Part shown: positions 24,893 through 31,301 of the stretch, piece by piece
Position numbering within the stretch: the first letter of the stretch is position 1
Layout of the letters: every line of letters begins with the position of its first letter
Assembly: GCA_013416795.1 (NCBI GenBank)
Contig: RQSC01001193.1
Span: forward strand, 1 to 51,734
Source of the DNA: Prasinococcaceae sp. CCMP 1430
Lineage: Eukaryota; Plantae; Prasinodermophyta
DNA length: 51,734 bases
Direction of reading: 5' to 3'
Program-made: the position numbers and the translations under genes
The notes under the pieces: generated by a model
Databases searched by the model: none
What the model was told of the DNA's origin: nothing
Seen by the model: the letters and a program-made list of their open reading frames with translations, nothing else

Positions 24893-26590
24893 TTGGGGTT
24901 GAATCAGGAGTTAAATGAGGGTGTGCTTTGGCATCGTAAGGTATCTTCTCGTGCATGCGTGGATAACGCCCCTCTGCTGCGTGGGAGCAGGGGGGGCGCC
25001 GCCTCCCCTCCCCTCCCCTCCCCTCCCCCTCCCCTCCCTTCCCGTCCGCTTCCTCTCCCCTTCCCCTTCCGCTTTGTTGCCGGTCGCCGCGGCGCAGCGT
25101 GCGGAGCCGCGGCGGGGCGCGCCACAGCGCGCGCGGGGGAGCGGGGGTGCTATGAAGGGGGCGTCGATGGCGGCGACGGCAGTGGGGGCGCCCTCGGCGC
25201 GACGGCCGTGGCGTTCACGGCCGTGGGCGCGCTCTGCGCGGCGGGCGACGTACCCCGCGGCGAGGCGCTCGCGTTCGCGGTGCCGACGGCGGTGTGTTGC
25301 CTCGCGCCGGCGGTCATGTCGGCGGTCGACACTGCCTTCGTGGGCACGTGCAGCGGCGTCCTGGACCTCGCGGCGATGGGGCCCGCCGTGATGGTGGCGG
25401 ACCTGACCGCCATTGCCCTCGGGTGGCACAGCGGCGCGACGCTCAACTACGGCCTGCGCGCCCCGAACGACGCGGCCAAGCGACGGGTGTTCTCGGCGAG
25501 CCTGGCCATCGCGGCCATGATGGGAGTCGGCGTGATGGTGTGGCACCTGTGCGCCGCGGAGTCGCTCGTGGGCGCCTTCCGCCCGAGCCCCGAGCTGGTG
25601 CCCGCCGCCGCGGAGTACGTGCGCGTGCGTGCGTGGGGCCTCCCGCTGCTGTGCCTCTCCAACGCCTTCTACGGCATGTGCGCCGCCCGAAAGGACGCCG
25701 TGACCCCGATGCTCGTCGCGGGCGTGAGCTGCGCCGTGAACGGCATCGGCGACTGGCTGTGCGTGCGCGTGTGGGGCATGGGCGTGGGCGGCGCCGCATG
25801 GGCCACCATGCTCAGCCAGGCGTTCGCGCCGCTCGCCTACCTGTGCATCCGCTCGCTCCGGCGCGACCTGCAGGGACTGCGGTGGCCCGCGCGCGCCGAC
25901 TTCGCGCCCTTCGCGCGCTTCGCTGCGCCAGTGCTCTTCGTGACGCTCAGCACGCTGTCCATGTTTGCGGTGCAACAGTGGTACGCCTCCCAGCTGGGCG
26001 TGCAGCTGGCGGCGGCGCACAAGGTGGCGGTGGGCGTCTTCGCGGTGGCAGCCTTCCTGGGCGACCCGCTCAGCCTGACCGCGCAGGCGTACCTCCCGGG
26101 CCTCATCAAGCGCGCCGATGGCTCCGCGAGGCGCTTCGCGCTGTGGCTGTGCGGCGCGAGTGCGGCAATGGGCGCGGTGGCAGGGCTGGCCATCACGCTC
26201 TGCCTGACAGTGTTCGGCGCGAGCTTCAGCGCCGACGCGGAGGTGCGCGTTCTAGCGGCGGCGGTCGTTCCGCAGGCGGTGCTGAGCGTCGTGGTGATGC
26301 TCCCCGCGCGCGCACTCAACGGCGCGGCGGTTGCGTGTGGCGATCTCCTATTCTACGCTGGTGCCACGGCAGTGAACGCGCTGGGCTTCGCGGTAGCCCT
26401 CGGCGCGCTCCACGCGGTGGGCGGGCAGGGCGCGCAAGGCCTTGGGGGCATGTGGTGGGGCACGGTGCTGTTCTACGCGCTGGGCCTCGTGCAGTTCGCT
26501 CTGCGGCTGCTCGCGCGGCGCAGGAGCCCGCTGTCCGCGGGCGCCGGAGTTCGCAGGGTGGCTGCGGCCGCATCGGCCAGTGGTGCATAG
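24893..26590 (+). CDS. MATE efflux family transporter, EDS5/DTX46-like; true start unresolved
   Basis: About 12 hydrophobic segments. VMSAVDTAFVG...LAAMGPA, AAEYVRVRAWGLP, KDAVTPM, VNGIGDWL...GVGGAAWATMLSQ. The ORF-track start is a TTG and no in-frame ATG was seen. Confidence 0.88.
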   Translation: MGLNQELNEGVLWHRKVSSRACVDNAPLLRGSRGGAASPPLPSPPPPLPSRPLPLPFPFRFVAGRRGAACGAAAGRATARAGERGCYEGGVDGGDGSGGALGATAVAFTAVGALCAAGDVPRGEALAFAVPTAVCCLAPAVMSAVDTAFVGTCSGVLDLAAMGPAVMVADLTAIALGWHSGATLNYGLRAPNDAAKRRVFSASLAIAAMMGVGVMVWHLCAAESLVGAFRPSPELVPAAAEYVRVRAWGLPLLCLSNAFYGMCAARKDAVTPMLVAGVSCAVNGIGDWLCVRVWGMGVGGAAWATMLSQAFAPLAYLCIRSLRRDLQGLRWPARADFAPFARFAAPVLFVTLSTLSMFAVQQWYASQLGVQLAAAHKVAVGVFAVAAFLGDPLSLTAQAYLPGLIKRADGSARRFALWLCGASAAMGAVAGLAITLCLTVFGASFSADAEVRVLAAAVVPQAVLSVVVMLPARALNGAAVACGDLLFYAGATAVNALGFAVALGALHAVGGQGAQGLGGMWWGTVLFYALGLVQFALRLLARRRSPLSAGAGVRRVAAAASASGA

Positions 26591-26685
26591 CGAGCCCAAC
26601 CCCACCTCGGAAAGCAAGTAATATTATTGTTCCCCTCTCGCCGCGGGCCAGCGTGCACGAGTGTGCGGTCGTGCGGGAAGTGCGC

Positions 26686-29600
26686 CTACTGCTTCTTGCC
26701 GCCGCGCGGTCCACCCTTGAGGTTGTGCCAGAAGCCCTTCTTGCTCGGAGTGCGCGCGCTCGGTGACGGCTTCGGCCTCATCGAAGCGACGGCAGCAGAG
26801 CTCGATGGCGTGCCCGGCGCACCGACGACGCCCGGCACCGACAGCGCGGCTGACGCTTTTGGCAACGGGCTCCCGGGGCTCGGCGCCATCTGGGCGTGAT
26901 AGTTGCTGGGTGCCGGCGACGGCGGCACCGCCGAAGCGCCCTCGGCACGCAGCCTCTCCACGCCGCCGTTGAGAGCCCTGCCCGCGGCACCCACCTTGTC
27001 GGCGCCCGCCGCCGGCTTGGCGGGGCTCGCCTCGCCCCCACCTGGGGCGGTAGCCGGCAGCGTAAAGGGGGGGAGAGTGCCCTCAGCCTCGCTCCCGACG
27101 ACGGGCGGCACACCAATGCCGAAATTGTTTTCGCCACGGACTGCCGCGAGCGCGGCCGTGCCGGTGCGCCCCGACAGACCGTCGAAGCCCACCAAGGGAC
27201 CGTTGCGGCCGTCCCATGAATCCACGCTGTTCCTGTGGCTGACGGCGCTGCCCGTTTCGTCTCCCGAGCCCACATCGCCGCCGCCGTCGCTGCTGCTGCC
27301 ATCCTTGCTGCCGTCCCACCACTTGTTGAGCACGCCGAACGATAGCTTCTTGCTCATGACCGACTGCTCCACATCGTCGGCGCCGTCGACGATCTCAGCA
27401 AAGGCCTGCAGCACGGCCAGCGCGTCCTCGGAGTTCCCGACGTAGTATTTGCCGAGTGAGGTGCGCCTCCCCACCGTCACGGTGTAGAGCTTGGGCGCCG
27501 GCCCGAACAGGTCCGTCCGCCATGTCATACGCCTGCGCCCAAGCAATGCTGCCGCGCGTTCGGCCGTCGCACCGTTCGCCTGGTCGTCACCGGTCGAAGT
27601 GCACGCCGTGAGCAGCTCCATCTTGACCATTGGCCACTCATCCTCGCTGATCTGCCTGCCGTGATACGACACGCGAAACTCGTTGAGTACTTCTGCGCCC
27701 TCCGTGTTGATTAGTGCCTTGTGAACCGAGAAGCCCAGCCGGCCCATAGCTGTTGTCAGGTCACGCAGCAGCTCCGACCGATCCTTGCCCCTGATCTTTA
27801 CGATGGAGTAGGCCCCGCCGCCTTCGGAGGGCTGCGCTTCAGGCTCGCCGTTGCTAAGCGAGATGTCGTACGCCGAGGACGACGAAGACGCCATTGACTT
27901 GGGCGCGGCGCCGTCAGCCGCGAGCTCGCCGGCCTCCGCGGAGGCGGGCACATCTCCGGTACTGGGCGCGAGGGACGCTGCCATTTGGGCATCGAGCGCG
28001 GCCAGCGGCCTCGGCGGCGACGGCGGATCCGCACTGGCTGCGCCGAGATCTCCGGCCTCCGCCGCCGCGCTGGCTGGGCTCGCTTCGGTCGCATCGCACT
28101 CGAAGTAGCTGAAGAGGTCCTCGTCCTTGCTGAGAAAGTGCCCCATGACGAACACGTAATCGAAGAGCGACGTTCTGGGGCAGGCGCTTTGGGGCGCGCT
28201 CTCCGCGCCCATCTGCGCTCCGTCCTCGGGCCCGTGCACAGATTTGTCGCCCTCGTGCAGGTGGGGCGCAATCTCGCTGAGGATTTTCTCCAGCGCGATG
28301 CCCTTGCTGATGCCAACGGGGCGCACCTCCACACTTCGCGCGCCCTGGAAAACGTCCACTGCAGAATTCGAAATCGGGCCCGTCCACAGGTGCTGGAGCA
28401 TGTCGCGGGCCTGCGCGCGGCCGAACTCGGGGTCGCTGTGCTTGTACGACCATACGATGGACGTCTCCCTCGTGTGTACTGTCGAGCGCGGCGTGCGCTC
28501 ACAGAAGTAGTCCATGACCATCTGTACGCTCTCGATCCAGCCCAGGTTGAGCGTGCTCGGGTGGTGGATCGCGCGCCAGACAGCGCCACGCTCGGGGGGG
28601 CGCAGGAATACGCCATTTTCCGCCGCGAGCCACACCGGCAGGTCACCCATGAGATCCTCGATCGTGTGTCGCTCCGAGCCCGTGAACACGAGCACCGTGG
28701 TGCAGGGGTCCGCGGCAAGCCGTGAGAGCAGCTCCTTCGCAGCCGGGTGCATGCGCGTGCGCCCCTTGACAGTGTCGTACCTCCGCTTGCCGTCGCGCTG
28801 CTCCATGGAGCTGGTCGTGAGCGTGCCGTTGTAGCCGATGAGGACCAGCCGACGCTTTGCTCCACTGAAGGCGTCGACAGCCTCGTTGTACGGGAGTGGC
28901 ATCGTGTACGACGCCGTTCGTAGCTGCTCCTCAACGTGCGTGTCGTTGAGCTCGCTGACAAAGTTGTCCGCCCACGCCTGTGCTGTGTGGGCGACCACGT
29001 GTGCGAAGTTGTGCCTGTGGCGCTCCTCGCGCTCCTCTTCGGACATCGTGAGCGCCTCCTTGATCCCGTGCGACATGTCGGTCACGTCCCACGGGTTCAC
29101 GAGAATAGCGCCGGCGCCCAGGCTCTGCGCAGCGCCCGCGAACTCGCTCAGCATCAGCACACCCTTCTTGGAGCCCGTGTGGCACGCCACGTACTCGTAG
29201 CTCACCAGATTCATGCCGTCGCGCAGCGACGTCACGAGCGCCAGGTCGGTGACCGCGTACAGAGCGCACAGCTCGTGGAAGGGCATCGAGCGATCAAGGT
29301 GGTGGATCGGCACGCTGTCCAGCGTGCCGAAGCGCCCGTTGACTCGCCCCACGATCTCGTGCACCTGGGAACGCAGCGCCTTGTATTCAGGCACGTCCAC
29401 GCGCGTGGGTACCGCGATCTGCACGAGCAAGACGCGCGAGCGCCACTCGGGGTTCTCCTCGAGGAACTTCTCGAACGCCAGGAGCTTCTGTGGGATGCCC
29501 TTGATGACGTCGAGCCTGTCCACGCCGAGCATGACTTTCTTGCCCGCGAAGCGCTCGCGCAGCATGTGCACGTGCTGCCGCACGGGCTCCGTCCGCAGTG

Positions 29601-31301
29601 TTTGCCAGAACCTCTCCGGATCGATGCCGATGGGAAAGGCGCACACGCGTATCACACGCCCGTTGTCCTCGACGCCGGCCGGCGTCCCCTCGAGCCCCAG
29701 GATGCGCGTGCAGGCGCTCACGAAGTGGCGCGCGTAGTCGTACGTGTGGAAGCCCGTGAGGTCGGCGTGCAGCACGCCGCGCAGGATCTCCGAGCGCAGC
29801 GGCAGCGTGCGGAAGATCTCGCTCGACGGAAACGGCGTGTGCAAGAACCATCCCACCTTCATGCTCGGGCGCATTTCTTTCAGGTATTGCGGCAACATGC
29901 ACAGGTGGTAGTCGTGGCACCACACGACATCTCCCTCCCTGTACACCGTGAGCACCGCGCGGCTGAAGAGCCGGTTCGCCCGCTGGTACGCAGACCACTG
30001 TGAGCGCGCCGTCTGCGCAGCGTCAAGCTTCTCATGCGTGGGCAGCGGGATGTAGTGGAAGAGCGGCCAAAGCACGTTGTTGCTGTAGCCATTGTAATAC
30101 AGCTCGTACGTGCGGGCGTCCACGAACACCGGCAGGCACCCCTTGCTCGCCAGCGCCGCCGTGAGCTTCCGCTGCTCCACCGGGTCGCTCACCTCGACGC
30201 CTGGATGGCCGATCCACGTCGTGTCGTAGTTGTCGCGCACACCCATCAGCGCGCTCACCAGCCCGCCCGCGTTGCCTGTGAGCTTCCATCCGCCGTCCGG
30301 GCGCCGCTCCGCGCTCACCGGCAGGCGGTTCGCCACCACGAGGAGCCGCTGGCGGGGTTGCGGCGGGGCACCCAGCGGCAGCGATCCATCCGCCCCGTGC
30401 GCCGCGCCTCCGCCGACGACGCTGGCGGTGCGCGGCGAGCTCATTGCGCCGACGCGGCCCCCTTGGACGAGGCTGCCCGCTCGCACGCGCACGGACGAGC
30501 CCGAGCCGTTCGAACTCGCGAGGGAGCCGTTGTTCTGCAGAGCACGCAGCGCCTGCTGCGCCTCGATGAGCCGTGAGAGATCCTCCGCGCTCGAGCTCGG
30601 CGTGGGCTGCGCGAGGTCGTCGCCGCTGGACGAGGTGCGCATGCTCCGCCCCACCGACGCCGAGCGGCGCATGCGCTCCGAGATGAGGCGCTCCACGCGG
30701 CTCGTCGAGATGTAGTTGCTCCTGCTCCGACCGGCGCCGGGAGGAGCGGCGGGGCATCCGTGTGTCAGCACCACGAGGGCACACTCGCCCGCGCATGCGC
30801 GCGCGCGCGCGCACGCGCGAGGCAAGGGGGCGGCGCTAGCGCCACGCACATGTTGGAGAGCGACTGGTCCGACGGCAGCGACGCGGACAGCACCGACGCC
30901 GTGCGGGGCAACCCCGGCGTACCCAGCAGCTCAATGCCGTTCCCGCCTCCACCCCACGCCCCCACGAGCGACGCCACGCTGCCGTCGCGGCTCATGCTCA
31001 TGTTGCGCGCTTGCTCGAACGACAGCCTTGGCGCGAACGCGCCGCCCGCCGCCGCCGCGCGCCCATCCGGCGTCGAGCGCCGCCGCTCCCCCAGCAGGCC
31101 GGCGAGGCTGCCTGACGAGCCCACCCCGCCATGCGCCGCGTACACGTGGTCGTCCACGCCACCTCCTGCGACCGCCCCCTTGAATATTTCCGCGATGCCG
31201 CTCATCGAGTTGCTCGCCGGGCCGCTCTCGCTGCCGCCAGCGCTGCCACCCCCATTGTCACCCTCGACGGCGATGCCAGGCACGATGAACGGGCGCGACA
31301 T
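26686..31301 (-). CDS. TPS1: Class I trehalose-6-phosphate synthase (GT20 + TPP-like HAD domain) with an inserted ACT-like domain; complement(join(26686..30721,30850..31301)), 1495 aa
   Basis: SRVERL N-terminal motif, RLLVVANRLP, VWCHDYHL, GWFLHTPFPSSE, GVDRLDVIKGIPQK, RDGMNLVSYEYV, LSEFAGAAQSLG, and GYNGTL (degenerate HAD motif I). Intron 30722..30849 (gtgcgt...gcag) joins the two ORFs in phase. Confidence 0.95.

Follow-up and report, generated by a model that had tools for sequence, protein, structure and literature searches.

A minus-strand gene on contig RQSC01001193.1 from Prasinococcaceae sp. CCMP 1430 (Prasinodermophyta; assembly GCA_013416795.1) encodes a class I-type (TPS1-type) trehalose-6-phosphate synthase (TPS); a surface loop of its trehalose-phosphatase (TPP)-like domain is predicted to contain a folded ACT-like domain of the GlnD/ACR lineage. 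The assignment to this lineage is made because profile matches, the AlphaFold fold and structure searches agree. Searches of the full-text literature found no account of a TPS with an ACT or ACT-like domain (an automatic InterPro superfamily call on the UniProt entry is possible); both components are well known, and their combination is new. The term "window" refers below to the whole stretch of 51,734 nucleotides that was analyzed. The gene product is identical to a protein of a public collection named for Prasinoderma coloniale (EP00793_Prasinoderma_coloniale PRCOL_00005333-RA), and the sequence is referred to by this species name.

The segment lies in a minus-strand open reading frame (ORF; 26686..30849, 1387 codons), of which residues 168-635 form the glycosyltransferase family 20 (GT20) TPS domain (28945..30348, minus strand; PF00982, 595.8 bits, profile positions 2-472 of 473) and residues 697-918 the TPP-like HAD domain as far as motif IV (28096..28761, minus strand; PF02358, 132 bits, profile positions 17-205 of 235). 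In the translation, HAD motif I reads GYNGT, not DxDGT, and motif IV reads GHFLSKDED, not GDxxxDED; both catalytic Asp positions are thus substituted, and the phosphatase part is therefore termed TPP-like, as in class I TPS. By its motifs the HAD domain is probably inactive. By far most of the named best matches are plant and algal proteins called 'alpha,alpha-trehalose-phosphate synthase [UDP-forming] 1', and over the TPP-like region they are TPS1-type proteins of these groups with 45-53% identity; the class I assignment was made from domains, motifs and best matches. An N-terminal extension, a full GT20 domain, a TPP-like HAD domain with degenerate motifs, and a long insertion between motif IV and the last strand are shared with the class I TPS of land plants and streptophytes (Arabidopsis TPS1 type).

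The insertion site follows HAD motif IV and precedes the last core strand (LYTVTVGRR). The loop comprises 211-236 amino acids, the folded domain included, and contains, in the order of translation, a low-complexity, Ala/Ser/Pro-rich N-side linker (27871..28098, minus strand; ORF residues 918-993), the ACT-like domain with the order beta0-beta1-alpha1-beta2-beta3-alpha2 (27598..27870, minus strand; ORF residues 994-1084, corresponding to residues 925-1015 of the database protein P0001 and 1102-1192 of the 1495-residue full-length protein), and a short C-side linker (27523..27597, minus strand; ORF residues 1085-1109). The chain then returns to the HAD core with the motif W-x-x-D/E-x-F-G-x-x-P-K-L, the last strand (TVTVGRRTS) and a helix (27385..27522, minus strand).

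Identity and fold of the inserted segment

A preliminary description of the window had placed an ACT module of the GlnD/ACR type at 27601-27810, between two HAD blocks. The peptides quoted there are real: positions 27810..27601 (minus strand) encode 70 residues (ORF residues 1014-1083; YSIVKIRGKDRSELLRDLTTAMGRLGFSVHKALINTEGAEVLNEFRVSYHGRQISEDEWPMVKMELLTAC, YSIVKIRGKDR...MELLTAC), with GHFLSKDEDLFSYFE upstream at 28143-28099 and LYTVTVGRRTSLGKYYV downstream, all in one minus-strand frame. The module between motif IV and the last strand was recovered by profile matches, by the predicted fold and by structure comparison; a domain is indeed located in the span proposed, but its true extent is larger (about 27598-27870), with an additional N-terminal strand.

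A profile of the segment from two sequences, P. coloniale and its sister species, was run on 1.84 billion representative proteins, of which 112 matched at E<=1e-3, the lowest value being 8.2e-13. When 10 top matches were scanned with Pfam, nine had PF01842, PF22754, PF24931, PF24914 or PF24926 at the matched positions; the remaining one (P0161) has no Pfam ACT or ACT-like family and is likely spurious. The named clusters comprise glaucophyte proteins, plant ACR3-, ACR6- and ACR12-like proteins, and short GlnD-type proteins; matches of GlnD length (790-930 amino acids) align in their C-terminal part, the GlnD reading being based on length and match position, and a language-model search likewise retrieved ACR clusters. 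An alignment of 64 sequences (A5) has the consensus V-x-x-x-D-R-P-G-L-L ... A-x-I-x-T-x-G ... F-x-V, to which the TPS segment conforms. The resemblance of the segment to ACT exceeds chance. The ACR proteins of Archaeplastida and their glaucophyte homologues are the best sequence matches (E 8e-13 to 1e-3); unlike the insert, which is a single domain within an enzyme and has lost the Pro-Gly of the DRPGLL motif in Prasinoderma, ACR proteins are stand-alone and have two to four domains in tandem. The C-terminal ACT domains of bacterial GlnD (PII uridylyltransferase) belong to the same ACT-like lineage, but are arranged in tandem on a nucleotidyltransferase/HD enzyme, and the TPS insert is likened to them by sequence and fold.

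Structure prediction, which had been proposed as a check, gave an ACT-like fold. With the two sequences alone the AlphaFold model reached a predicted local distance difference test score (pLDDT) of 76.8, and with alignment A5 the model (AF2) reached a pLDDT of 89.5 (core blocks at least 95) and a predicted template modelling score of 0.79, with the order strand-strand-helix-strand-strand-helix (strands 2-6, 21-28, 46-56 and 59-68; helices 33-44 and 75-90). [quoted passage not shown] The additional N-terminal strand (YDISLS) is part of the folded domain in the model, which accounts for the span of about 27598-27870.

The top 50 Foldseek matches were ACT or ACT-like nearly throughout. In an exhaustive VIA-align comparison, the ACT-like domain of maize R ranked first (Z 10.9, 76 residues, root-mean-square deviation 2.6) and that of Arabidopsis GL3 second (Z 10.3, 78 residues, deviation 2.2), both alignments covering model residues 1-90 with the additional first strand included; the ACT-like module of large GDH, Galdieria 2nyi, PurU, and aspartokinase regulatory domains followed. 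ESM Atlas models of ACR/GlnD clusters aligned with template modelling (TM) scores of 0.78-0.85 over 83-87 residues, within residues 1-93. The ACT-like domains of the bHLH factors R and GL3 (PDB 9c7o, 9c7n) are therefore the best solved matches to the whole model, but share 12-15% identity with it, and are located C-terminally on transcription factors, where they dimerise and modulate DNA binding, whereas the present domain is an insertion in an enzyme of metabolism or signalling. A combination of ACT and HAD folds is found in mycobacterial SerB2 (PDB 5is2, 5jlp; Foldseek E 1.9e-3), a HAD phosphoserine phosphatase that binds serine at its ACT domain; in contrast to the loop insert in the HAD domain of the TPS, the ACT domains of SerB2 are N-terminal, in tandem, of canonical topology and attached to an active phosphatase.

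The exonic status of the segment, for which a cDNA check had been suggested, was settled by transcript contigs from two runs of two studies labelled Prasinoderma coloniale (X1, X2). In both, position 30850 is joined to 30721, so that a GT..AG intron of 128 nt (30722..30849, minus strand; borders from the sequence) is skipped and the contigs are therefore cDNA-derived. They are continuous, with no joint, over 26632-30720 (X1 record 2) and 27049-30352 (X2 record 5), hence unbroken across the ACT segment, which is therefore present in the mature mRNA. Two metatranscriptome contigs (X3, X5) map to adjacent parts of the gene, outside 27601-27810.

Some results weigh against the assignment. The Pfam ACT family (PF01842; gathering threshold, 27 bits) matched an 82-residue piece of the P. 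coloniale protein at 22.1 bits (E 1.3e-4) and the corresponding piece of Prasinococcus capsulatus at 26.3 bits, both below threshold, and the additional N-terminal strand is backed by just three sequences of the alignment. In the whole ORF, Pfam ACT reached a sub-threshold 16.7 bits at residues 1016-1060, and a Pfam scan of the sister Prasinoderma piece gave no PF01842 match; the P. capsulatus piece also matches four further ACT-clan families. Sequence searches of the PDB with two- and three-sequence profiles gave weak matches (E 0.03-1), mostly to Rel/RelA ACT domains and 1zpv, which are too weak as sole evidence. The sub-threshold Pfam score and the weak PDB matches would agree with there being no real domain, i.e. 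with a chance match of a linker to a loose ACT pattern or with a segment that is spliced out. Such an artefact is hardly credible, and already close to refuted, in view of the library-wide E-values, a confident fold with Z above 10 to ACT-like structures, conservation and purifying selection (below), and the spliced transcript contigs and a P. capsulatus transcript (P0259) that retain the segment.

Conservation and distribution

The same insert is present in a sister Prasinoderma species, known from contigs of marine metagenomes (Tara among them) that also carry the MatE neighbour. Between the two species the ACT-like part is 68% identical, compared with 31% for the N-side linker, 29% for the C-side linker and 82% for the HAD-core return. 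The ratio of nonsynonymous to synonymous substitution rates (dN/dS) is about 0.25 for the ACT-like part, about 0.7 for the N-side linker and about 0.13 for the TPP-like core; these ratios are rough because dS is near saturation. Judged by these substitution rates, the ACT-like insert is under purifying selection.

In Prasinococcus capsulatus, the ACT-like domain encoded by a transcript of the MMETSP collection (P0259, 1103 amino acids) occupies the same site; its linker is shorter, and it is 31-33% identical to P. coloniale. A metagenome contig of a Prasinococcus relative (L006, 44% GC content; P0232 is the same gene) carries an ACT-like exon, followed by an intron of about 92 nt and then the last HAD strand. 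By sequence comparison, four Prasinodermophyta genes thus have the insert at the same site, two of Prasinoderma and two of Prasinococcus type; the return motif W-x-x-D/E-x-F-G-x-x-P-K-L precedes the final strand in all four, and 22 of about 90 columns are invariant across three of the insert sequences. That the insertion point is identical and the flanking motif shared argues for a single ancestral insertion in the Prasinodermophyta. A domain tree, which has few columns, speaks neither for nor against one clade of the four inserts (delta log-likelihood 0.41, approximately unbiased test p-AU 0.49).

A survey of algal TPS1 had also been proposed, together with the claim that the TPS1 of land plants has a variable linker at this site and no known ACT domain. 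This claim holds for the land-plant TPS1 inspected and extends to the chlorophyte ones inspected: no ACT match was found in 117 other chlorophyte and streptophyte TPS (including Pyramimonas, Coccomyxa, Dunaliella, Trebouxia, Mesostigma, Chlorokybus, Mesotaenium, bryophytes, ferns, seed plants, and uncultured picoalgae), none of which exceeded 5 bits against either ACT profile. Their loop is of low complexity only, with 53-146 residues in most of those measured and a few longer (247 in P0099), in contrast to the 211-236 residues with a folded domain here. One Pyramimonas protein with 95% query coverage (P0075) was considered as a second lineage and rejected, as its 300-residue loop is of low complexity and without ACT signal; a prokaryotic stand-alone ACT protein encoded beside ferredoxin genes (P0183) was dismissed as irrelevant. 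Word-index searches with the insert alone returned its own gene clusters only, at a sensitivity bound to shared 5-mers. The Prasinoderma TPS itself is missing from the matches among the 1.84 billion representatives, as the 50% clusters are represented by insert-free TPS proteins; that search therefore cannot prove that the insert is absent from other TPS.

Two shorter isoforms of P. capsulatus (P0053 and P0258, 972 and 961 amino acids) diverge just before or inside the ACT-like domain and are without the last HAD strand; they could represent intron retention or alternative splicing that removes a regulatory module. Three metagenome TPS-TPP proteins (P0054, P0062, P0063; 1119-1173 amino acids) bear a response-regulator receiver domain (PF00072), by its Pfam assignment another regulatory fusion on the TPS scaffold. 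The ACT-like fold was also observed in chlorophyte Atlas clusters, in a protein with Mito_carr and EF-hand domains (549 amino acids) and in an EamA transporter (704 amino acids), with TM scores of 0.84-0.85 over 85-87 residues. By these predicted structures, ACT-like domains seem to be fused to further green-algal proteins, and they may have been shuffled onto several proteins in early green algae.

Proposed function of the ACT-like insert

A survey published in 2023 (PMC10175843) gives GlnD, ACR and bHLH proteins as the only hosts of ACT-like domains. The host context of the present insert, a TPS with GT20 and TPP-like domains, is outside this set and thus represents a fourth host context for ACT-like domains, and the Atlas matches hint at more green-algal fusions. 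The ACT domains of GlnD act as small-molecule sensors, the function of those of ACR proteins is unknown (PMC10175843), and the ACT-like domains of bHLH proteins are dimerisation modules, not sensors (PMC8202348), which form dimers as single domains and in this way modulate the bHLH to which they are attached (PMC8202348, PMC10175843). In GlnD and ACR proteins, the DRPGLL loop is a putative ligand site (PMC10175843). Its counterpart in the P. coloniale insert is DRSELL (27766..27783, minus strand; alignment A5); the Prasinoderma inserts read DRSELL or DRQELL, the P. capsulatus insert DRNGLL and the L006 gene DRNDLL. The D, R, L and L are hence invariant in all four TPS inserts, and the Pro-Gly positions are occupied by SE, QE, NG or ND; many ACR repeats in alignment A5 are also without the Gly of DRPGLL.

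ACT-type domains generally operate in pairs. One ACT-like domain per TPS chain would be unable to form the paired arrangement alone; as a single domain cannot pair with itself, it would therefore most likely work as a pairing module. Our tentative reading, to which we give somewhat less than even confidence, is that the insert is a pairing or regulatory module, ligand-gated or not. It would pair either with its counterpart on another TPS chain or with a free ACR-type protein, and pairing would set the oligomeric or conformational state of the TPS and hence its activity. The insert would in this way assume the regulatory role that in land-plant TPS1 belongs to a linker at this position, which is disordered and carries post-translational modifications. 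Pairing may be gated by a small ligand at the interface, but the evidence does not require a ligand. Pairing is supported by the best solved matches, which are bHLH ACT-like domains of the kind that dimerise as single domains (PMC8202348, PMC10175843), and by the fact that the Gly of DRPGLL is not conserved among the TPS inserts. What speaks against the pairing module is that no direct evidence for self-association of the insert was obtained, that its nearest sequence relatives, GlnD and ACR, are thought to be sensors, and that D-R-x-x-L-L is invariant in four of four inserts. A homodimer prediction for the isolated domain (score 0.09, mark 0.32) says nothing for or against pairing.

These sequence relatives, the sensing of small molecules by GlnD ACT domains (PMC10175843), the invariant D-R-x-x-L-L core and the Gly retained in P. 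capsulatus (DRNGLL) would fit an insert that binds glutamine or another amino acid, as in GlnD, and ties the synthesis of trehalose-6-phosphate (Tre6P) allosterically to the nitrogen status, a connection already raised in the preliminary description. We rank an amino-acid sensor second, as less likely than a pairing module: where DRPGLL has Pro-Gly, Prasinoderma has SE or QE and L006 has ND, ACR domains offer no established sensor function for comparison (PMC10175843), and with one domain per chain a ligand site at the interface would still need pairing. In its strongest form, in which an insert of GlnD/ACR ancestry works in Prasinodermophyta as a sensor of glutamine or amino acids and gates the synthesis of Tre6P directly, the proposal appears improbable; if true, the carbon-status signal would be computed at the enzyme from sugar and nitrogen inputs, as a hard-wired carbon/nitrogen integrator, which later green lineages would have swapped for phosphorylation or SUMOylation of a disordered linker.

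The insert may, thirdly, be a neutral folded passenger, an ACR-derived exon captured in a permissive loop and kept only since misfolding harms the enzyme, with no regulatory role. The loop tolerates 53-247 arbitrary low-complexity residues in other lineages, and ACT-like folds also occur within other green-algal proteins (the Mito_carr and EamA clusters), as a passenger would lead one to expect; its retention at one and the same site in two genera that are deeply separated, the conservation of surface as well as core positions (the 22 invariant columns) and the dN/dS of about 0.25 make it unlikely.

For the pairing or regulatory module, the position of the insert is relevant. Phosphorylation and SUMO sites are reported for the corresponding region of Arabidopsis TPS1, in a paper that cites Fichtner et al. 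2020 for them (PMC9079074), and by position these sites appear to fall in or beside the same loop. Tre6P is the central signal of sugar status in green plants, and the regulation of TPS1 itself is poorly understood. The TPS1 orthologue from the deepest-branching green phylum bears at this loop a folded module of nitrogen-sensor ancestry; because the module sits where Arabidopsis TPS1 apparently bears regulatory modifications, the loop is marked as a candidate ancient control point, for which the insert would provide a domain-sized, tractable handle.

Gene model and neighbouring genes

The coding sequence consists of two exons. Exon 1 (30850..31301, minus strand) starts with the ATG at 31301 and encodes a low-complexity N-terminal extension (ORF 30765..31301, starting MSRPFIVPG), in agreement with the start of the database proteins P0003 and P0010; the start of the mechanically predicted ORF at 30849 (GTG) is located within the intron. 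Exon 2 (26686..30721, minus strand, including the stop codon) is a single open frame for the TPS and TPP-like domains, the ACT-like insert and a C-terminal tail, and was used as search query. Joined, the two exons (31301..30850 and 30721..26686) encode 1495 residues identical to the full-length database protein P0010.

The gene model PRCOL_00005333-RA (P0003, 1435 amino acids) is without 60 conserved residues of the GT20 core (VTSLRDGMNL...SHGIKE; positions 29058-29237 of the window, minus strand), which are present in the transcript contigs X1 and X2 and in the proteins P0001 and P0010; because these retain the residues, the gap is probably a falsely predicted intron. At the C-terminal end of the protein, KKGFWHNLKGGP (26689-26745, minus strand) is kept in the sister species as KRGFWHELKGGP, while the preceding tail of about 230 residues has just 36% identity; by this conservation, the extreme C-terminus may be a short linear motif. 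Downstream of the TPS gene, an ORF for a MatE-family transporter is located in convergent orientation (24893-26590, plus strand); this neighbour recurs on contig L001 from the Tara metagenomes, and ORFs of it that are cut off are present on sister-species contigs.

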